NCBI RefSeq assembly: GCF_000400465.1
Contig: NW_008806281.1
Span: forward strand, 270,001 to 302,000
Direction of reading: 5' to 3'
From: Wallemia ichthyophaga EXF-994
Taxonomy: Eukaryota; Fungi; Basidiomycota
Length of the DNA stretch: 32,000 nt
Shown here: in pieces, positions 7,924-30,548 of the stretch
Layout of the letters: each line of letters opens with the position of its first letter
Position numbering within the stretch: the stretch's first letter is position 1
Position numbers and translations under genes: made by a program
Notes under the pieces: generated by a model
Database searches by the model: none
Told to the model about the DNA's origin: nothing
The model's input: the letters and a program-made list of their open reading frames with translations, nothing else

Positions 7924-7963
7924 TACTTTAGTGCTCGCTGTTACGTTGTAAGAAGTAACTGCC

Positions 7964-13382: not shown

Positions 13383-16300
13383 CTATGCACCGATGATAGT
13401 CTGTCTCTGTATAATAGAGCACTGATTCTCATCTCTGCCGACATGCCAAAAGAAGTTAGTGACATTATACTGACTGAGATACTTCAAGAAATCCTCGTCA
13501 TGCGTAATGAGTATGAGTTGAAAATTCACATCAAGCTGCTTGCGTTCGTGTATCAACTCTGCCAAGCCACTAGCGAGCGACTGAATATTTTCCTGGTCGA
13601 GGTTGGTTGTAGGTTCATCTAGGGCGAGGATGCCACACTTATCCCCGAAGCTGTCTGCCAATGCCAAGCGAATTATAATCGACGCTAGCACCTTCTGTCC
13701 AGCTGAGCACCTACCGCGCATATCCATCTCGGTGCGATCTTTCGCCATGACGACGCGGTAGTTGTACGATTTGCCTCCACGTGCGCCTTCTGCATCGGAT
13801 CGGATAGCTATCGTGTCGATGTCGGTGCCCTGGTATGTGCGCTGCCAGAGGTGGTGTATCTGTTCGTTGATTTCGTCCATCTTTAGACCGTGGAACTGGA
13901 GAATAGCGCTGTTGTAAAGTGAGTGAGCTCATTAAAAACAAACACTATAAATACCCACCCCTCGAGTGCTTTGGCATATTTCTCCAGATCGTCGTTCGCG
14001 AGTGAAGAAGCGGTGACGGCAACATGCTGACGATGGTGTATATAGTCGATATCCTTGTACTCACTATCGAGGTCACTTGTCAACCCATCGATTCTCTTCT
14101 TCTCGCTGAGGAGCTCTCCACCGAGAGCATAATGCTGGGCCTGTTTATCTGCCTCCTTTGCGCGACTATCATCGTACATCTCATCGAATTCTCTTTTAGC
14201 GCGCGTCGTTTCCTCGAGATCGTACGAGTTAATCTGATCGCGCAACTCGTCGAGTTCTCTAGCGAGTTTGCGATGTCGGATATTATCGCTTAAGTTCCGC
14301 TCTGCCTCTTTCGCGCTCGCGGCCGTCTGTTCGTATGAGCGAATGTTCTCGTGGAGACGTTGAGCGTGTGTGCGCGACTCCGCCTCTTCAGCTTCGAGAG
14401 CGGCGATGCGCTCGAGTGTTTCAGCCAGTTTCGTGAGCACGTCGCTGGATACGTACCCCGCAATGGTGCGGTTGGCAGAGAGAAGCTGCTGCACGTATCC
14501 CTCTACTTTGTGGAGTTTGGAGCGGGCAGTCTCCTCAGCACGCTCAACTTGCTCACTGTGCTCACACTTCTCCCGCTCTAGTACATCTCGTGGACCAGAC
14601 AAAGCGTCTATCTCTGGATCAAGCATGCGCGATTGGTCACTCAGCTGCCGTATCTCCAGATCTATCTCAGTTAGTCCACCCTTGGCAGCTTCTAGCTCCC
14701 GAGCTGCGTTACGAGACTGCTCTAGTGATAACTGTTTCTCGTGATGGCACTCCTGAGCATGCGATAGCTCCTGCATTTTCTTCGCCTTGGCATGCTGAGC
14801 CACTGTAAGTTCATCAGCCGTGCTGCGAATGCGCGCGGATATATCGCCCAGCTCCCGCTGTACTTCTTCAAGGGTGAGGGAGGAGTTGGAGGTGAGTTTG
14901 AGTTCGCGTTCGAGCGAACTGATCTCCCGCTCAAGGTCTTTTATCTCGCGCAGCACACGCGATACGTCTCCAGCTAGCATCTTGAGCTGCTCAAGCTCAC
15001 CAAGAGCTTTCTTACCCGCGTCGAGACCTGAATCTGCTCTATTAACATCTCTCTCCAGTATCGAGTGCTTCGCTTCGAGCTCGCCGATTGACGTAGTGAG
15101 TGAAGGCAGCTCAACACTGCACATGCGATCGAGATTGCTCGCTACTGGCTTAAGAATTTTTAACCCCTCGTGTATGCGCGACCACTCCTTCATGTCATTC
15201 TCCACCTCATCCAGATGGGCCGGATTGAGTTTGTCGAGACGGCTGTTTACATACGATTCAAATTTGCCCATCTCGTCACCATCGCTAATGCTCCTATTGC
15301 AACAACGACATTTGTGTTTGGCGCGTGCAATTTCGAGAGCCTTGCGCAGAAAATCCCCAGTACCACTACTTTCGTGTATCTCAGCCATACAACCGTTCTT
15401 CTCTTCCTCTGCGACGCGCGTTGCTTCTTCGAGCGTAGCAGCGTCAGTCTGGGACGATTTCAATGCCTCATCTATGCGTTTCTCCACATCTGCGTGATAG
15501 CCTTGTTAGTAATGCGATGCTTACGAAGCAAATCAACCCCAACCCACGCGCTATCTCTGCCTTCTTTCCCTTTTCACGCTGCCTCTCACCGCCGAGTATC
15601 GTCTCGAGCTGGTTGAACTGCTTGGTAAGAGACTTGTATTCACTCTGCTCGCGTTCAAAATCACCCTCGCGCTCGCGATACAAGCGACCAACGGATATCT
15701 CAAGTGTCTCTGGATCGCTATCTGTGAAATAAACATCTATTAGCGCCTGCTTGTTAGCGACGCTTGACTGTACTGTACTCTGCTTGCGCTCAAGATCAGA
15801 CTTTTTGATAGCAAGGCGTGCACGCGTGTCAGATTGCTGGTTGAGTGTAGCCATCTCCCCATTACGTTCATCCTTGCGCTCTTCGAGGGAGCGTATCGTC
15901 GCTGTCATATCGGAAATCTTGTCGTCGTAGCGCAAAGATACAACATCATCATTGATGGCTTGAAGCTGACGATAGGATTGATCGACATCGCTCTTCATGC
16001 CTTCAATTTTGTTATATGTGGTGCTAAGATCATCGATTTGAGACTGAGTACGACAGCGCTTCAGGTTATGCTGATCAATCTGCTGTCGGATACTAATTTT
16101 AGCTTGTTGCTTTGCAACTAGTTGGGCTGCGATACTCTGCACTTGCTGCTCGAATTCACGTTGTTTGAGAGTGCCGTCGTTGCGCACTTTCGTGACCTCT
16201 TGGAGGTGCATTTTAACACGACCTTTGAGGCTATCGAGGAAGGCGATGGCAGCATCTTGGTTATCGTACGAGTCCATTTCGATGCGCATGTTCAACTCGC

Positions 16301-17486
16301 GGGCGACATCACCAATGAGGTCAAACCTCTTGCGCAACTCGTCGTCGTATTTGGTGGCCTCGGCTTCGAGTTGACCTCTTGTGGTTAGGAGAGATTGAAG
16401 GCGGCGGTTGATGAGGGATGATGATTCTAGCTGTGAATGATACAGGACTGACTCGCTGTCTTTCAATCTCAACTGCTCATCGAGGTGAGACTGAAAGTTT
16501 GTTTGGCGGATATGCAAATCTTGATCAGAGTCGTTGAGAATGGAGATGGAGAGGGAGAGAGAGTTTAGGTTGTCTTGGATGAGAGTTTCACGTTGTTCAA
16601 GAGTTTCAACCTTCTGAAAAATTTCAGTCAACTTGGAAGCAGATTGGTAGAGTTCGCTGTTAGCATGAGAGAGGGTGTCTATTTCAATGGCCAATTCATC
16701 AAAAAGGAGTTGTTTATGGTGAATGTCATTTGTGAGGGAATTGAGTTGATGACGTAATTTGGAAGCCCTATCTTTATCTGAGGAGAGCGATTTAAGTTTC
16801 TCAGATTGAAGTTTAAGATCGATGTTTCTGTCTTTTCTAAGAACCTTTATGCTATCTAAAGCCTTTGTAAACCTCGTTGCCTCGAAAATGTCGTCAAATT
16901 TTTTTTTCAAAACGGAAGGTTCAGACAAAGGCCAATTGGAGTCTTCTTGATGGCAAAAGATGACGTTATCGAGAACAGCTTTTGAAGCGCCGATGAAGAG
17001 AGGGAGATCGTTATCGATAGCAGCGCACTTGGAAGAAATGGCGTTCCTCTTGTTGGTCTTTGTGTCGATGGATTGTAGAGTAGCTTCGAGGGTCTTTGAG
17101 GAGAGTGTGTTTGATCTGGATTGGGTTGCTTGTAGATTTCGGGTAACAGTGAGTGTCTGTTTGGATGTCGATGTGAATCTTAGCTTTACTTGGGCTTTTA
17201 CTTGAGTTTCATTGGCCAGCTTTGGATCGTGGATGAAAGCGCCGCCTTTTGAATTCGGAGGGAGATAACCGGTAGTGGAGTATTTCAAGCATTCAATAAT
17301 TGTAGTCTTCCCACTCCCATTATGCCCAGAAATGATTGTGATTGGCTTATCAAACTGGATAACTTCGTTTGATTTATCGTCAAAGGAGCGTATACCACGT
17401 ATTAGCAGCTTCTGTATATAGCCTGGGTTTATTAGAAATATTAGATTTACCTTCAAATTTACCAGCATCTCCTTTAACTCACTCAT
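13383..17486 (-). CDS. RAD50: DNA repair protein Rad50 (MRN complex SMC-like ATPase)
   Basis: [16 protein letters not shown] (4-nt first coding exon, intron 17423-17482), Walker [20 protein letters not shown], long coiled coils, hook CRCC, signature CSAGQ, Walker B LALDEPT. Further introns near 15490-15547 and 13912-13961. Confidence 0.96.
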
Positions 17487-17497
17487 CGACGTCACTA

Positions 17498-19573
17498 ATG
17501 AAGGAGATTCGCTGTGTGGTTTGCGGTGATCAAGGCGTTGGAAAGACGTCGATAATCGTTAATTTAATTAAAAATGATTTTATAGAGGTGGTTGATCACT
17601 GCCTGCCTGAGGTGGTTGTCGAGTTGGATAACAATCTACACCTGATCGACACTAGTTCCTTGAATTTAGAGCGAGAACTAAAGAAATCTAATGTTATATG
17701 CCTGGTCTACTCTGTCGCTGACCCTAATAACCACGAAAATATTCAAAATTGGCTTCTCTACTTTAAATCTATCGGGATCAATAACCCTATCATTCTAATC
17801 GGCAATAAAATTGACTTGGACTGTCCCAGCTACTCTCTCCACTCGGACATTACCCCAATCATGAAGCAATTCAAACAAGTTGAGTCTTGTGTTGAGTCTT
17901 CGGCGAAATTGTCTATAAACATCAACGAAATCTTTTATTTCGCTCAGAGGGCTGTTCTCTATCCTACAGCTCCCTTATACGATTCCAGGCTACACACCCT
18001 TAAGCCTGCTTCTGCAGCTGCTTTGTCTAGGATTTTCAAACTCTGCGATTCAAATAAAGATGGTCTCCTTGATTATACTGAGCTCAATGCATTTCAAATA
18101 AAGTGCTTCAACTCGCCTTTGTCCGATGGAGACCTCCGAGACATTACCCAGCTCGTCTCCCAGCACTCCCCCCAAACCATCAGCACACTCCCAGACAATT
18201 CAATCGCTCTCACGCAACTCGGATTCATCCTCCTTCATACCATCTTTATCCAGAGAGGAAGACTGGAAACCACGTGGTCTGTTTTGACTAACTTTGGCTA
18301 CGCCCAGGATTTGCGATTGAAGGAAGATTTCCTGTATCCAGAGTGGGTTTCATTTACACCCTTCTACTCTTAACTTATTACATACAGTCTCCACATACCC
18401 CCAAACTCATCTGTAGAACTCTCTCCACAAGGCTACTCATTTTTTACTGAGATTTTTGAAAAGTTCGATGTAGATAAGGATGGAGCGTTGTGCGAGAGCG
18501 AGCTAGAAGAGCTATTCGCAACGTCGCCCGGTAATCCATGGCTCAATAATGGGTTCCCCGACACCACACTTACAGACGAGAAAGGTGCCGTCACTCTGCA
18601 GGGCTGGCTAGCGCAGTGGAGGTGAGTGTGCGAGCGCTTCTACGAAATATCGCACTCATAAACCCACAACCACAGCATGACTACACTCCTCGATCACAAA
18701 ACTACATTAGCTTATCTCGCCTACTTGGGCTACGAGATGGCTTCTGCGCACGAGAACGCAACAACGACATCTGCGCTAAAAACTACCCCTCCTCGTCGTC
18801 GTTCGGGGGATCGCGGAGCTCTTCAGCGCAATGTATTCCTCGCCTATATCATAGGTGCGCCCAACGCCGGCAAAACGAGCCTGCTGCGCGCGCTGCTCAA
18901 CAAGCCGTTTGCTGGTGGGGGTAGTGTGGGTAGCTCGAGCGGTGGGAGTGTGCTGAACGCTGTGAATGCAGTAGAGATGGAAGGTGGTGAGAAGTACCTA
19001 GTAGCGCAGGAGGTGGTTGATTTTGCTGATGTCGCGGGGGGTAGTGGGAGTGTTAGTGGCAAGCACGCCAAGGGCAAACCAGCCACTACGCATCTCCCCC
19101 ACCTTCACAAAGCGGATGTGCTCGTACTAGCGTACGACTGCTCCGACGCCACATCCTTCGCACACCTCACGCACCTAAACAGCATTCACAACCTAGATGG
19201 GCTAGACACGCCGTGCGTCTACGTCGCTACCAAGTCAGACCTTGATCTCGCGCAGCAGCGCAGCGACGTACAACCAGATGTTTATTGTAGGCGTCGCGCA
19301 CTTAATGTGCCCATCGCTGTGAGCGTACAGGCTGGCGAAACGGCGGGACTATTCCAGTATATCTGTTCAGTCGCCAGTACACCCCTTCAAGCCCTGCCGA
19401 GACAGAGGAGAGGAAGGAACGTCGTTAACGCACTCTCTATCGCACTCACTCTCGGGGCTGGCTCTATTGGTATACTTGCCTTTCTCGCCAGAGTTTACGG
19501 CTGGAGATCTCCCACTTCTCTCCTGCTGTCTACGTATAGAGGCGCGTTGCTGTGGGCCAGGAGCTGGCTGTAG
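17498..19573 (+). CDS. GEM1: Mitochondrial Rho (Miro) GTPase: GTPase-EF-EF-GTPase-TM
   Basis: GDQGVGKT, FYFAQRAVLYPTAPLYD, EF hands DSNKDGLLD and DVDKDGAL, GWLAQWSMTTLLD, second P-loop GAPNAGKT and C-terminal TM. Introns 18343-18387 and 18622-18675. Confidence 0.96.
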
Positions 19574-19731
19574 GGGAGTATTATGATATGATTTTGATTT
19601 TCATTCATTTTATTTATTTTTATTCTCGTCTTATCTGTCTTGCTTTCCACGTTGGTCACCTGCATAAATTAATTCTCGCGCGTAATTAACAGATAGGCAA
19701 TGGGTGTTGGAGCATCACGACGACGACGACG

Positions 19732-20660
19732 ATGCTTAAGAAACTACTAACACTGATAATAGCACTCACACTCACACACGCACTAAAGGGAAGCTGCCCA
19801 GCGGATTTGCCGGTCAGCTGCAGCAGAGAGGCGCGCCAATCGCCCGCGGACAGCTGCTGTGTGGAGAAGAACGGGCTACTACTGCTAACGTAAGTAGAGT
19901 TCAATCATGCCACAACCTTATCTTACACCGCGCTACAGCCAATTCTGGGACTGGGTAGGTGAAGCTTGGTATCGGCACCAAATGACGTCACCTGACACCA
20001 CACCAGCACTACTCACCCTACGAAGGCCACGAAGACATGTGGACGCTGCACGGGCTCTGGCCTGATCGCTGCGATGGCAGTTATCCCCAGTTCTGCGATA
20101 ACAGCATGCAGCTGCACAACATCACCTCCTCCCTTCTAGCAGCGGGCGAGACGGACCTCTACCAGGCTATGAGCACTGTATGGCTCGATAACCGTGGACA
20201 CAACGAGCACTTTTGGCAGCATGAGTGGAACAAACACGGTAGTTGCTACAGCACACTCAAACCAGCCTGTCAAGCGGATAGCAGCGAGAGTGGGAGCGAG
20301 AACGTGGACACAATGATTGACTACTTTTCTCGCATTCTTAACACCTACAACCGCTTCCCGACCTACGAATTCTTGGCGAACAGAGGCATAACTCCTTCTT
20401 CTACACACACTTACAAACTGGCAGACATCAAGCACGCGCTCAAGGAAGCATTTGGTTACGCTCCAACTATCAAGTGCGATGGTGGCGGTAATAAGGTACA
20501 CGAAGTTTGGTACTCGTTCAACCTCGAGGGACCACTTGTTTCAGGAACGCTCCTCCCGCGTGAGCAAGTGTCCGCTGATAGCTGCAGCCAGGACGTCTAC
20601 TACCTTCCCAAGCACCAGTCGCGTAACAAGCACAGCGCCAGTGCCATTCCGTGGGTATGA
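19732..20660 (+). CDS. Secreted ribonuclease T2
   Basis: Signal peptide MLKKLLTLIIALTLTHA, SCC..GLLLLTQFWD, CAS I WTLHGLWP, CAS II FWQHEWNKHGSC. Two short 5' introns. Confidence 0.93.
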
Positions 20661-21943: not shown

Positions 21944-23123
21944 CTACAGCATATCAATGTCATCGTTCTCAAGCGGTCTAAGCTGTTGGTGTGTCAGTAG
22001 AGCACATTGCCTACTACTCACCCACAACGAAATCTATGAATGTCTGCTTGCCATGAGCGTCTATGACCATCATCTGTAGGCTGAGCATCCCAATGCTGTT
22101 TATACGCAAGCTAGTCTTGTGCGACGCAGCAATAGCTTTAGAGGCGTGGAGAATATGTGCAGCTCTATACCTCTCACACACCACGCCTTCTACACTCCTC
22201 ACTATACTATCGATAGGACCATCGTCCCGCAGAGCCAGCTGCTCGCTTTCTGGGAAATCAAACTCCAGCGCACCAGTCTCGGAAATGGCACTGAGACGCA
22301 GAGCAGGGGCATTAGCGGATGTGTCTGCGGGTGAAGACAGTGTTACTACATCTGTCTGCGTCTCGAGCGCTGCAAGTGCATCAGACAGCCACTGCGATTG
22401 CATTATCACCTTCATCTGTCTATATTTGAGATGACGTCATTTGCGCAATCTACCCGCCAAACAGCACACTCACACGCTTTCATCGTCGAATGGCAGCTCT
22501 AGTGCTCCATCAGAAGCAATATCATACTCATTCGTCTTGAGCTCGACAGTTGTCTGCGGTGACCACATACTGTCGTCTGGGAGAATAGTAGGGGGAGCGA
22601 TGCTGTGTTGTTAGAAGGGGAAATCAAGCAACTCCACACACACATATCTAATGCTAGTGGATATCCATATCCCTGGTAATTCAATTTCAACACTGTAGGC
22701 ACATCCTGCTCTCCTTTTTCGGAACAAGTAAAATTCGCGTTGGTCACCGTCGTAGTGGCATTGCCGTAGATGTTCATAGTTTCTATTAGGCTACTGATTG
22801 ATATTTCCATCTGCACTGCACCTTCACTGGACTTAAACGCGTATTCGTCGAAGAACGTACGCGGTATATACCCTTTCGCTGTGACTTCTTGTCCGGATTG
22901 TACGGTGAACTGTAGTCCAGCATCGCGTATCTGTAGTACAGCGAGCTGCGTGGGTGGGTGGTTGTCAGTTTACATCGCTTTGTGCTTACATTTGCTAACC
23001 TTGGCAAAGCCTATGGATTTCAGTACTGCGTGGACTGAACGTATATCACACGTCTTGGCTGATAGTATCTAAGGCTTGAAAATTACTTGTCTGGATTGCT
23101 ATTAAATTACAACGCACTGTCAT
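21944..23123 (-). CDS. RAD1: Rad1/Rec1/Rad17 subunit of the 9-1-1 checkpoint clamp, multi-exon
   Basis: Spliced model MTILSAKTCDIRSVHAVLKSIGF..GLQFTV..AKGYIPRTFFDEY..SLIETMNIYG..YQGYGYPL..KVIMQSQWLSDAL..ASHKTSLRINSIGMLSLQ..FIDFV, a PCNA-like Rad1 pattern. The name follows S. pombe/human usage. Confidence 0.82.
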
Positions 23124-23197
23124 CGCCTGCCTGCGTGTTGACACCAGACAACAACAATCCAAGTAAATTCAAGTAAATTACTAGTAGGAAATCCAAA

Positions 23198-27868: not shown

Positions 27869-28846
27869 ATGAGCGACGAAGAGTTCGAAGAAGGCCCTGA
27901 TCCATTCATGGTTGATCTGGGTGAGGCGAATACGGGGAATCTAAATCTACTCGAGGAGTCGCACAGGATGGAAAGTAATCAGCAAACGGAATCGGCCAAT
28001 TCACTGGCATTTGAACTGGCAGCAGCGTTTGGGAGTGGGGGCAGTGGAGGCAGTCCACTCAAAACGCAGAGGAGAGTGGTAGATGAAGCACACACTTCTT
28101 CTGAGGAATCCAGCGATGACGAACAGATGTACACACTTGACGAAACACAGTTGGAAAAATACAACGCGGAACTTAACAAGGGGATTGAGATTAATGCTCA
28201 ATTTCTCAATAAGCTCGTCGATATCGATAGCGGACTGCCTATGCTTGAATCAACAGCTACAGTTGTAGTGAAAAAACTGGTGGAGACAGCGAAAGTGCGG
28301 GATGATCAGAGCAGGCAGCTTTGGGAAATGGATAGAGAGTTGAGCAAAGAGGACGATAGAGTGTTGGCGGTGCTTGAACCGTTGGAAAATGAGAAAATTG
28401 AAGGATTAGATAGTATAGAAGAGGAGGTGGATGAGGTTGGTGATAGCGTCAATAGCAATATGAATGAGAAGGTCGTTGATACTTACAATAACCACCAAAG
28501 CACCAGCACTCTCAGTAATACCGATAAATCAAACAGTAGTATACCCAGTTTAGAAGGATTCATCGATGAATACCTATTACGATCACTAGGAATGATCACA
28601 GAGATATCACAAATATCAACAGCCACGCTTAACGAGTCAAGTAGAAAGACGCGTGCTATGAGAAGTACCCTGAGTGGGATAAAGATGGAGGACAAACGTA
28701 CAACAAAGGCAATCCAAGTAATCGAGAGATTGGAAAGTAAGAGTAAAACATCATTGAAAGACTTGATGGATAAATTACAAGAAGATTTTATAACAAAGAT
28801 GAATAAAATGACAGAATGGGTTAGTGTACAACGTGTCTCACAATGA
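27869..28846 (+). CDS. Hypothetical acidic coiled-coil protein (325 aa)
   Basis: Long intronless ORF with coding-like composition. No domain recognised. Confidence 0.7.
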   Translation: MSDEEFEEGPDPFMVDLGEANTGNLNLLEESHRMESNQQTESANSLAFELAAAFGSGGSGGSPLKTQRRVVDEAHTSSEESSDDEQMYTLDETQLEKYNAELNKGIEINAQFLNKLVDIDSGLPMLESTATVVVKKLVETAKVRDDQSRQLWEMDRELSKEDDRVLAVLEPLENEKIEGLDSIEEEVDEVGDSVNSNMNEKVVDTYNNHQSTSTLSNTDKSNSSIPSLEGFIDEYLLRSLGMITEISQISTATLNESSRKTRAMRSTLSGIKMEDKRTTKAIQVIERLESKSKTSLKDLMDKLQEDFITKMNKMTEWVSVQRVSQ

Positions 28847-29212
28847 TAAAATGGAGCTATAAAGAGATGACCAGTCTGTGGATTCTAATGAAGGGTTCTC
28901 GATATCGTTGATGAGATTTTTTATTTCAATTTGAATTGAATTTGGCGTGTTTGAGGGAATAGACTGGGGGATTGTGAGGAAGTGAGAGTGAGTATATTTG
29001 GCACTCACAACAGACAAATACAAGTCATTAAAATACAAAAAGTAAATGATTTGATTGGTTGTGACAATCAGCTCCAGTGATTGGCTGTTGAAGTTGCTTA
29101 TAAACTCAACTAAACCAAGGTATAATCCAACGTTTACACTTTCATTTGACGTCAAATTTAATAAAATTGATTTAGATTTGTTAAAAATGATGAATTGAAT
29201 AATTTGAGTCAT
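28838..29212 (-). CDS. Small protein, possible longin-like (Ccz1/Intu first longin) domain
   Basis: FIIFN...GLYLGLVEFISNFN..LELIVT..IIYF..DLYLSV loosely resembles Ccz1-type longin 1. A probable 45-nt intron lies at 28964-29008. Confidence 0.5.
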   Translation of the reverse strand: MTQIIQFIIFNKSKSILLNLTSNESVNVGLYLGLVEFISNFNSQSLELIVTTNQIIYFLYFNDLYLSVVSAKYTHSHFLTIPQSIPSNTPNSIQIEIKNLINDIENPSLESTDWSSLYSSILSL

Positions 29213-29245
29213 TTAGGATGAAAGAAGGTATACGTTACGTCCACC

Positions 29246-30548
29246 ATGTCGATTGAAGGGAGTAAAAGAGAATTGATCGAATTAAAGTTGTTTGAGGTAC
29301 AAGGTAGGAATTGGTTTTGGTTTTTGGTGAGACAACTCTAATTATTTGTAAACTATCAAAGAACTTCGACACACCGACAGACCTTATGACTTCAAATTAC
29401 AAGAAATAGATGAAATAATTGAGAGTACTAATGAATCTGATCAATCTAATGAATTTGGTGATATAATCGATGAAATAAATCAACTCAGATCTCACTCAAA
29501 GGATAAGAATTGGCAGATTATCTACAAATCTACTTCAAATCAAGCTAAATTTATGATGAATAGTTTAGATAAATCTTTTAATTTCGTTGAACAGTTGCTG
29601 GATAAACCAAATTCACCTCAATTCGATGAGATATACTCTTCGTTCAAAGTAAAGTGCAATTACTACATTCCTTCAATTCAAAGAGTTTTAAACATTTTAT
29701 CAAAGTCAATCACTCAAGGTTTCAATATCAACGGTGATTGCCTTAGAGACCACGCTGATTTACAGCAGAGATGGAAAACTTTGGACAACAAACTAGAAGA
29801 AATTGACTCAAAATTGATTCAAATAAAACACTCAAACGATGTTGACATTTTAAACGATAAGCTCGCCCTTTTAAACCTTCAAACTCCTTCAAAACCTCAA
29901 TCACGTCCTTCTTCTAGATTGTCTCATTCACGACCTCCTTCACGTCTCCCTCGTCCTTCAACTCCCTCACGCCCATACAGCCCCACCCCTTCAATCCCCT
30001 CAAATTCATCTACACCCTCACGAATACCACGTTCTTCTCGCTCCTCTTCCCTTCTTTCGGCTGACATTGGTCGTGGTAGAAATCTCCTCACTCCTGAGCC
30101 CACTCTTAGAGCAAATGCGCGTCCTTTTTGGGGCGCTTCTAATAGCCCCATTCCACGATCCAGGAGGGTTGTTAGTGGTAGATCTTCCATCCTTAGTAGC
30201 AGCACATCCAGCAAAAATGAAGATAGCGGTAATTACCTCCCCAACTCCATAGACCCACTAGATGTTCAAGTAGGTATAATTTACAACGATCATGGCCTCG
30301 GCATCGGAATTCAGAGGATCGATCCCCCTCTCTCTCGTAGGCCTCGGCCTGAAACTGTCTCAAACATGCAGGCTCAGTACGCCTTCGAAACTCCGCACAA
30401 CAGGAAAGTAGTTAACTGTAAGCTACTAGAAGTAAAAGCTACAAGGCGTGCTCAGTTAAACGGAGAAGGCGACAGGAAGAAAGTTATGGTTAGAGTCGGC
30501 GGTGGTTGGAAAGATCTATCTCATTATCTCATCGAAAGGCAGCAGTAG
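29246..30548 (+). CDS. GAS2 (GAR) domain protein with helical N-terminus and Ser/Pro/Arg-rich linker
   Basis: C-terminal KVMVRVGGGWKDLSHYL GAR signature. The upstream exon from ATG 29246 joins in frame via intron 29304-29361. Confidence 0.8.

Follow-up and report, generated by a model that had tools for sequence, protein, structure and literature searches.

Divergent gene pairs, compact genomes and start-codon introns

Head-to-head protein-coding genes that share one short common control region are familiar from yeasts and mammals as bidirectional promoter pairs. In the textbook form, ca. 100–200 bp separate two transcription start sites that lie back to back, and the resulting transcripts share no sequence. 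Start-codon mini-exons are a further known feature of fungi, with ATG-proximal introns occurring in Yarrowia and in yeast ribosomal-protein genes, while the intronization of leader or intergenic sequence is a recognised route of intron gain. For compacted genomes such as those of microsporidia and nucleomorphs, PMC3629993 describes overlapping transcription (citing Williams et al. 2005), together with intron-bearing genes that combine 5'-proximal introns with short leaders.

The junction between RAD50 and GEM1 in Wallemia ichthyophaga resembles each of these systems in part. With bidirectional promoter pairs it shares the head-to-head orientation, one short common control region and AT-rich, presumably nucleosome-poor DNA around the starts; it differs in that only 11 nt separate the two ATGs themselves, which makes ordinary leaders possible only if the transcription start sites cross. 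Very short intergenic gaps and a 5'-proximal intron are shared with microsporidia and nucleomorphs, and the transcripts that there start inside the neighbouring gene would have their counterpart in Wallemia. Unlike those organisms, Wallemia is a basidiomycete that lives freely and has a normal number of introns (2.4 per gene in W. ichthyophaga; PMC3849046). As in the Yarrowia and yeast mini-exons, the first coding exon of RAD50 extends little beyond the ATG and is followed by a canonical GTGAGT and a short intron (43–60 nt), yet this intron corresponds in position to what is intergenic spacer in a related lineage, and the mini-exon lies directly beside the start codon of a divergent neighbour. 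The likeness to intronization, namely that sequence which is non-coding leader or spacer in the outgroup is removed by splicing in the ingroup with total length kept (60–77 nt), rests on a single outgroup lineage.

Architecture of the RAD50–GEM1 junction

The window analysed here is a stretch of 32,000 nucleotides from the very compact genome of the salt-loving fungus W. ichthyophaga, and its relevant features are collected in Table 1. Direct reading places the RAD50 start codon at 17484–17486 (CAT, minus strand) and that of GEM1 at 17498–17500 (ATG, plus strand), the GEM1 protein beginning MKEIRCVVCGD. The genes are oriented head to head with a short upstream region in common, a layout kept in five lineages. 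The 11-nt separation of the start codons, first put forward in the original prediction, was recovered on rereading and is confirmed as real and kept across the genus: the spacer measures 11 nt in one of three other Wallemia lineages (L003) and 10 nt in the remaining two (L001 and L005). Comparison of orthologous loci, which had been proposed as a check, also includes an outgroup (L004) where the genes again stand head to head but with a spacer of 61 nt, no intron and a contiguous ATG TCA TAT.

Collapse of the local assembly, with loss of a true intergenic region, had been named as a possible refutation and has a negligible chance of being correct, no observation speaking in its favour. An independent strain assembly (L002; 99.7% identity) carries an identical junction, devoid of indels or SNPs across 17423–17500, and matching architecture is seen in the three other Wallemia lineages, which come from different projects.

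Table 1. Positions of the junction features, invariant runs and public-model errors (numbering of the window).
Feature	Position	Strand	Description
Inter-ATG spacer	17487–17497	none	11 nt, CGACGTCACTA on plus strand
RAD50 exon 1	17483–17486	-	4-nt mini-exon ATGA; start codon and first base of codon 2
RAD50 intron 1	17423–17482	-	60 nt, GTGAGT...CTAAT...CAG, AT-rich; position equivalent to the outgroup spacer
RAD50 remainder	13383–17422	-	exons 17422–15548, 15489–13959 and 13908–13383; full model 1311 aa
GEM1 (Miro GTPase)	17498–19573	+	exons 17498–18342, 18388–18621 and 18676–19573; model 658 aa
20-nt invariant run	17359–17378	none	RAD50 codons 17–23; 120–139 nt upstream of GEM1 ATG; candidate element
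15-nt AT-only invariant run	17561–17575	none	AATTTAATTAAAAAT; GEM1 codons 22–26; 75–89 nt upstream of RAD50 ATG
19-nt invariant run	17679–17697	none	GEM1 codons 61–67; 193–211 nt upstream of RAD50 ATG; candidate element
Public-model error, RAD50	17468		start set here
Public-model error, GEM1			false 38-aa extension, fused to RNase T2 downstream
Public-model error, RAD50			uncalled in one W. mellicola assembly

Four divergent pairs occur in the window, with gaps of 11, 40, 74 and 171 nt (n = 4), RAD50–GEM1 being the shortest. Coding sequence makes up 73.6% of the W. ichthyophaga genome (PMC3849046), and the mean gap between coding sequences, as calculated from Table 1 of that paper, is about 373 nt. 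Since the other divergent pairs of the window lie only 40–171 nt apart, RAD50–GEM1 marks the far end of a tendency general to this genome. Scans of the window against Rfam and for tRNAs returned no matches. Short direct and inverted repeats near the junction were uninformative, as was TTAATTAA, considered as a recurrent motif but occurring once.

Gene models and placement of the start codons

Both genes had been identified correctly in the original prediction. The RAD50 model carries the typical features of its family, the SMC-like ABC ATPases of the MRX/MRN complex. An N-terminal Walker A lobe runs from residue 1 (GHNGSGKTT at residues 34–42), followed by a long coiled coil whose CxxC zinc hook reads CRCC and a C-terminal lobe with Walker B and a signature motif, SAGQKVLAS, near the C-terminus; Pfam matches comprise AAA_23 (2e-35), SMC_N and SbcC_Walker_B (residues 1180–1250). 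Residue 1 of the spliced protein aligns to residue 1 of both yeast Rad50 (9bi4_C; residues 1–199 against 1–197, E = 6.6e-70) and Chaetomium Rad50 (5dac_A), and a contiguous ATG stands at the exactly homologous codon in 46/81 non-Wallemia RAD50 loci, which bears out the earlier claim that the protein begins at the family start.

The predicted 4-nt first exon and its 60-nt intron were likewise upheld. The pattern ATGA/GTGAGT...CAG/G is kept in four Wallemia lineages, whose introns measure 60, 43, 50 and 49 nt, and ATGA/GTGAGT lies inside an 11-nt invariant run at 17477–17487. In the three other Wallemia lineages (introns of 43, 49 and 50 nt) the reading meets stops or frameshifts unless the intron is spliced. 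Intron 1 thereby behaves in this comparison as a spliceosomal intron does, with GT...AG kept, length drifting and the frame restored by removal; in W. ichthyophaga it contains two CTAAT branch-like sites, keeps the reading frame and has no stop codon, and the unspliced reading is open too.

GEM1 is 100% identical to the W. ichthyophaga protein, 66% to that of W. mellicola and, across more than 90% of the length, 48–52% to Miro proteins from other basidiomycetes. It has the architecture of a Miro mitochondrial Rho GTPase, with two GTPase domains around two EF-hand pairs and a C-terminal membrane anchor: Pfam assigns Ras (5–153), EF_assoc_2 (207–297), EF-hand (301–326) and EF_assoc_1 (333–403), a second P-loop GTPase domain spans 417–546, and the hydrophobic C-terminal tail reads VVNALSIALTLGAGSIGILAFLA. 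The P-loop glycine is residue 11 in 114 of 120 homologues and residue 10 in Wallemia, in agreement with the family start position anticipated for this protein.

A misplaced start codon, with the true starts farther apart, is nevertheless an explanation to be weighed. RAD50 could be read unspliced from an ATG at 17468 (1325 aa), or GEM1 could possess an upstream exon (975 aa); these very alternatives appear in gene models published for another strain, the 60-nt RAD50 intron gives no stop in W. ichthyophaga, and the frame 5' of the GEM1 ATG is open over 43 codons. However, the ATG at 17468 is not conserved, unspliced RAD50 meets stops in L001, L003 and L005, TAA TAA directly precedes the GEM1 ATG in L003, and L001 has a stop upstream of GEM1 with no ATG after it. 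The proposed positions are, moreover, those used by the 114 GEM1 homologues and 46 RAD50 loci above, and even a start at 17468 would leave a gap of only 29 nt. This explanation is very unlikely: homology, together with in-frame stops upstream that are followed by no ATG, pins down the start codons. Owing to the arrangement of the two genes, three public gene models at the locus are wrong or missing (Table 1).

Origin of the layout

The distance from the GEM1 ATG to RAD50 codon 3 measures 77, 60, 66, 65 and 67 nt across the five lineages. As this distance is roughly constant, the spacer did not shrink; rather, the RAD50 start codon probably moved. An ancestral spacer of about 60 nt would thus persist, now spliced out as RAD50 intron 1, and the start codon that RAD50 apparently gained in Wallemia sits on a mini-exon of 4 nt, ATGA, beside the GEM1 ATG. 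Gain of the intron is the direction suggested by one outgroup lineage and by many intron-less RAD50 genes elsewhere, where that state is the rule (46/81 loci with the ATG in place), although the reverse, loss of the intron with a new ATG, is formally possible. Adjacency of RAD50 and GEM1 was absent beside Coprinopsis GEM1, beside Sporisorium RAD50 and in 80 metagenomic RAD50 loci, and the metagenomic RAD50 scan yielded no additional Wallemia lineage (best match 63% identical).

Promoter space and leaders

It had been argued that the spacer leaves no room for a conventional promoter, and this holds for one side of the junction only. RAD50 is indeed squeezed, but as its exon 1 is 4 nt long and followed by an intron, about 75 nt of non-coding, AT-rich DNA lie between the GEM1 ATG and RAD50 exon 2, upstream of GEM1. 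The DNA of the intron region is, in the outgroup, the plain 61-nt intergenic spacer. By this comparison the squeeze really appears to fall on RAD50, whose ATG would have moved beside GEM1. The accompanying dilemma, that a leader is either tiny or reaches into the partner gene, is logically sound given the 11-nt geometry: the RAD50 leader must either lie inside GEM1 coding sequence or measure at most 11 nt.

AT-rich dips (22–28% GC) occur on both sides of the ATG pair in three lineages. Every Wallemia lineage has stretches free of upstream ATGs that would accommodate a GEM1 leader of 36 nt or more and a RAD50 leader of 70 nt or more; this depletion fits leaders of 36–70 nt or longer, varies among lineages and is statistically not compelling. 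Both Wallemia ATG contexts are weak, with T at -3 of RAD50 in 4/4 lineages, and would be compatible both with unusual initiation and with ordinary scanning. Comparison of the lineages revealed no TATA-like element conserved in position within the intron interior. The Tyr-Ile codons of RAD50 (TATATA, 17414–17419) were considered as a TATA box for GEM1 and rejected, since L003 has TAC CTA and L005 TAC ATA.

The core promoter and the leader of GEM1 probably lie in RAD50 intron 1. What follows for transcription is drawn from the geometry, the stretches free of upstream ATGs and the conserved coding patches. GEM1 would probably be transcribed from the AT-rich region of the intron and mini-exon with a leader of roughly 10–35 nt, and RAD50 probably from within the first ~10–30 codons of GEM1, downstream of the AT-only run (Table 1). 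The primary transcripts of the two genes would then have some tens of bases in common, in a head-to-head overlap.

Overlap would be avoided if both genes were transcribed with ultrashort leaders, from start sites placed back to back inside the 11-nt spacer, with translation beginning only a few bases after the cap. Other compacted eukaryotes provide examples of very short leaders, and neighbouring divergent pairs share only 40 and 74 nt, from which it follows that leaders in the W. ichthyophaga genome must often be short. Yet here both leaders together would measure at most 11 nt, and standard cap-dependent scanning, as expected in a free-living basidiomycete, is poor at recognising an AUG that lies less than about 12 nt from the cap. 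Furthermore, the spacer sequence is conserved at few bases only, while the conserved patches sit within both genes and outside the spacer. Such leaders are improbable. A literature search on Wallemia transcription start sites or bidirectional promoters retrieved nothing.

The spacer itself could alternatively serve as a shared control element, at which an ATF/CREB-type factor bound to TGACGTCG co-regulates RAD50 and GEM1, for example under salt or oxidative stress. The CRE-like GACGTCA pointed out originally is present at 17488–17494 and holds 7/8 bases of the CRE palindrome; this heptamer occurs 10 times in the window against 4.1 expected, a count reached by 3/100 shuffles, and two full palindromes lie in intergenic DNA. 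Conservation, on the other hand, fails: a palindrome of the TGACGTCA type does not appear at the orthologous position, where the spacers are TTATTACGTTG and CTCGACCTTG, the motif being replaced by TTACGTT in L003 and by GACCTTG in W. mellicola and L005, and missing in L004. A site between ATGs 11 nt apart would also fall at or downstream of both transcription start sites. As the motif is not conserved it is probably a chance occurrence, a functional CRE-like site is rejected, and joint regulation through the spacer is hardly credible.

Invariant runs inside coding sequence

Of the four longest runs of invariant nucleotides in the 12.6-kb three-way synteny, three lie within 17359–17697. Neither the 1860 nt of RAD50 nor the 12.6 kb of aligned synteny contains a longer run than the 20-nt one, which is invariant in three lineages and interrupted in L005 by two synonymous changes. 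In a codon-shuffle test, based on three lineages only and ignoring local variation in mutation rate, the runs exceeded expectation, with P = 0.014 for this run, P = 0.003 for the 19-nt run and P < 0.0002 for the latter jointly with the 15-nt run. The 15-nt run, where local GC is 22–25% in all three lineages, is a candidate AT-rich core element for RAD50. Taken as a set, the three runs, which lie in the 5' coding parts of both genes, suggest that control elements may be embedded there. A caveat is that the long invariant runs fall where the protein domains are most conserved. In bulk, synonymous conservation was not raised over the first 20–40 codons of RAD50 or GEM1 (P = 0.13–0.89), the signal being seen by the run-length test only.

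It is possible, though less likely than not, that the two promoters face each other, that of GEM1 within RAD50 intron 1 and that of RAD50 within GEM1 codons ~10–70, with the three runs in dual use as coding and control sequence. Because each promoter would then be embedded in transcribed sequence of its partner, the 5' ends of RAD50 and GEM1 would be sense–antisense partners. Such a state would have arisen as the ancestral 60-nt spacer became an intron and the RAD50 start jumped beside the GEM1 ATG.

Significance

Taken overall, RAD50 and GEM1 form a real, genus-wide head-to-head pair of nuclear genes, and we consider it fairly probable that its former spacer has turned into RAD50 intron 1, as a tolerated by-product of compaction. 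The layout is best read as such a by-product of genome compaction and not as a device coupling DNA repair to mitochondria. Neighbouring divergent pairs are 40 and 74 nt apart, and there is no pointer to a special link of that kind.

The pair offers a clean, conserved and tractable case of how Pol II promoters and leaders are accommodated in a free-living eukaryote whose genome is ~74% coding. It also suggests a route to compaction in which intergenic DNA is re-used as an intron rather than deleted, the start codon being shifted beside the neighbour. Were the leaders only tiny, the locus would be of interest for fungal translation initiation; if embedded promoters are true, it would constitute a natural, genus-wide case of promoter elements constrained in coding DNA of a free-living fungus.

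Start codons at the junction

On the plus strand, 17480-17500 reads directly as cactCATcgacgtcactaATG. RAD50 lies on the minus strand, its ATG appearing as CAT at 17484-17486, while the ATG of GEM1 (plus strand, 17498-17500) opens MKEIRCVVCGDQGVGKT, and the 11-base spacer separating the two is CGACGTCACTA. The RAD50 ATG is followed by A/GTGAGT (slash, splice junction) and, 60 bases on, by the acceptor CCCAG/GCTATATACAG. The junction coordinates and sequences of the original prediction are thus exact.

Coordinates of features in the window
Feature	Coordinates	Strand	Description
RAD50	17486-17483, 17422-15548, 15489-13959, 13908-13383	minus	spliced model, 1311 aa
GEM1	17498-18342, 18388-18621, 18676-19573	plus	spliced model, 658 aa
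Divergent pair	7924-7963		TPR-like gene / ubiquitin-conjugating enzyme; ATG-to-ATG 40 nt
Divergent pair	23124-23197		Rad1 (9-1-1 clamp subunit) / Cys/Met-metabolism enzyme; ATG-to-ATG 74 nt (W. mellicola 62 nt)
Third other divergent pair			ATG-to-ATG 171 nt
Invariant run	17359-17378		20 nt, RAD50 codons 17-23
Invariant run	17561-17575		15 nt, AATTTAATTAAAAAT, GEM1 codons 22-26
Invariant run	17679-17697		19 nt, GEM1 codons 61-67

The GEM1 model carries the complete Miro domain set and is 100% identical to a W. ichthyophaga protein, 66% to that of W. mellicola and ca. 50% to Miro/Gem1 of many basidiomycetes. Rad50 domains are found in the RAD50 model. Both N-termini lie, as had been claimed, at their family start positions. 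The P-loop glycine is residue 11 in 114 of 120 GEM1 homologues and residue 10 in Wallemia; upstream of the GEM1 ATG, W. mellicola has an in-frame stop with no ATG between, and in L003, a sister lineage within Wallemia, two stop codons directly precede it. RAD50 aligns residue 1 to residue 1 with the yeast and Chaetomium Rad50 structures, and a contiguous ATG stands exactly ten codons ahead of G(I/V)RSF in 46 of 81 non-Wallemia loci. In the Wallemia lineages this contiguous start codon is absent, a CAG/G acceptor takes its place, and an invariant ATGA/GTGAGT lies 43-60 nt upstream. The unspliced reading meets stops in W. mellicola, L003 and a further Wallemia lineage, L005. Intron 1 of W. ichthyophaga is divisible by three and stop-free, so that here the unspliced frame is also open, uniquely among the lineages compared. 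An independent strain assembly has an identical junction (99.7% identity overall, no indel), so this is no assembly collapse. The adjacency of the two start codons is confirmed.

Conflicting gene models and genomic context

Public models from that other W. ichthyophaga strain place both starts elsewhere. RAD50 (1325 aa) begins there at an ATG inside intron 1 (17466-17468), and GEM1 at 17332, which adds 38 N-terminal residues read antisense to RAD50; the GEM1 model also runs into the downstream RNase T2, reaching 975 aa (17332-20660). Neither start is conserved across lineages, and these alternatives are treated as prediction artefacts of crowding. One W. mellicola strain likewise has a GEM1-RNase T2 fusion model, of 673 aa; a different assembly of that species keeps the genes separate, with just 83 nt between them. 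RAD50 has no annotation in W. mellicola GCA_004918515.1 (L001 3840-8001), the 4.1-kb stretch holding no gene model; the gene is present nonetheless, its 5' end apparently intact.

The W. ichthyophaga genome measures 9.6 Mb, with 73.6% coding sequence and a mean intron of 61 nt (PMC3849046); from the table in that paper, the mean gap between coding regions was calculated as ca. 373 nt. The other divergent gaps in the window (40, 74 and 171 nt) indicate that crowded starts are normal in this genome, 11 nt being the extreme. RAD50 (13383-17486) and the Rad1 homologue (ca. 21944-23123) are two DNA-damage-response genes at most 6 kb apart, a neighbourhood conserved in W. mellicola and L003. Elsewhere, 28001-30000 has a GC content of 0.34-0.41 and a strong plus-strand purine skew (GC skew 0.29, AT skew 0.21), overlapping a gene without Pfam matches as well as the beginning of a KAR9-like one.

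Promoters, leaders and probable transcript overlap

The original prediction saw no room for a conventional promoter, leaving nearly leaderless or mutually overlapping mRNAs. The dilemma is real, but the intron gives GEM1 non-coding room: spacer, 4-nt exon and intron provide ca. 75 nt upstream of its ATG (22-28% GC in three lineages), enough to accommodate a core promoter and a short leader. Upstream of the RAD50 ATG, GEM1 coding sequence is reached after only 11 nt, so that transcription of RAD50 starts either in the spacer (leader of at most 11 nt) or inside GEM1. GEM1 codons 14-27 show a matching AT-rich dip (22-25% GC). In every Wallemia lineage the nearest upstream ATGs lie far enough away for leaders free of uORFs to reach 36 nt or more (GEM1) and 70 nt or more (RAD50), a spacing compatible with overlap, though statistically not strong. 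Ultrashort leaders on both genes are very improbable. On the sequence evidence, some overlap of the primary transcripts is highly probable, most likely head to head and by tens of bases. A literature search for Wallemia transcription start sites or bidirectional promoters found no paper; the nearest described case is that of the microsporidia, with overlapping transcription and very short leaders (PMC3629993). Nothing indicates a functional link between RAD50 and GEM1.

Candidate embedded elements

Mean synonymous conservation over the first 20-40 codons is not elevated. In a three-way alignment, 12.6 kb of synteny contains only 12 invariant runs of at least 11 nt, and three of the four longest fall within 340 nt about the ATG pair; a further 11-nt run takes in the RAD50 ATG together with the 5' splice site. 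When triplets were permuted among alignment columns with the same conserved amino acid, runs so long had P values of 0.014 (RAD50), 0.003 (GEM1) and <0.0002 (two GEM1 runs jointly), from three lineages only and with local mutation-rate variation ignored. The 20-nt RAD50 run is broken in L005, and the runs sit in the most conserved protein domains. These data are suggestive of extra constraint on coding DNA around the shared starts, for example from promoter elements of the partner gene. K-S-N-(E)-V-I is the peptide encoded by each of the two longest runs, in similar codons (AAATCAAACGAAGTTAT, AAATCTAATGTTAT); as the genes are divergent, the runs form an imperfect inverted pair ca. 300 nt apart, which may be coincidence.

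The CRE-like GACGTCA is present in the spacer as described but is unique to W. ichthyophaga, the orthologous spacers being TTATTACGTTG and CTCGACCTTG. The window contains 10 copies where 4.1 are expected, a mild excess reached in 3 of 100 shuffles, and the spacer copy is regarded as probably due to chance. The earlier interpretation is supported in part, through the leader dilemma and not through the motif. The full palindrome TGACGTCA occurs at 19983-19990 (downstream of the GEM1 stop, before RNase T2 starts), 22432-22439 and 29147-29154 (upstream of a KAR9-like gene).

Origin of the arrangement

The head-to-head pair was recovered in five lineages, and the orthologous spacer is 10-11 nt in the other Wallemia lineages and 61 nt in the outgroup L004.

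Junction dimensions across lineages (nt)
Lineage	Spacer	RAD50 intron 1	GEM1 ATG to RAD50 codon 3
W. ichthyophaga (window)	11	60	77
L003 (Logan assembly; RAD50 N-terminus 86% identical)	11	43	60
W. mellicola (L001)	10	50	66
L005 (96% identical to W. mellicola)	10	49	65
L004 (metagenomic contig)	61	none	67

L004 is more distant (RAD50 70-74% identical, GEM1 N-terminus 45-50%), and its RAD50 has an uninterrupted start, ATG TCA TAT. An out-of-frame ATG 5 nt ahead of this start (L004 2280-2289, cccATGAGATGtca) opens a 9-codon uORF overlapping it; its ATGAG is similar to the mini-exon junction of Wallemia, ATGAG|TGAGT. Adjacency of RAD50 and GEM1 was not found in Coprinopsis, Sporisorium or 80 metagenomic RAD50 loci, and appears limited to this clade.

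The nearly constant distance from the GEM1 ATG to RAD50 codon 3 implies that the intergenic DNA has been retained. It is apparently spliced from RAD50 in Wallemia, with the RAD50 ATG at its far end, adjoining GEM1. Since intron-less RAD50 starts are usual elsewhere and identity values make L004 the outgroup, intron gain is the simplest reading: in the ancestor of the genus, judging from this one outgroup, the spacer or leader would have turned into a RAD50 intron, with the start codon shifted onto the 4-nt mini-exon. In W. ichthyophaga, retention of this intron would lengthen Rad50 by 20 residues. What is new here is how the arrangement would have arisen, namely through a start codon on a 4-nt mini-exon, with the ancestral spacer surviving as an intron.
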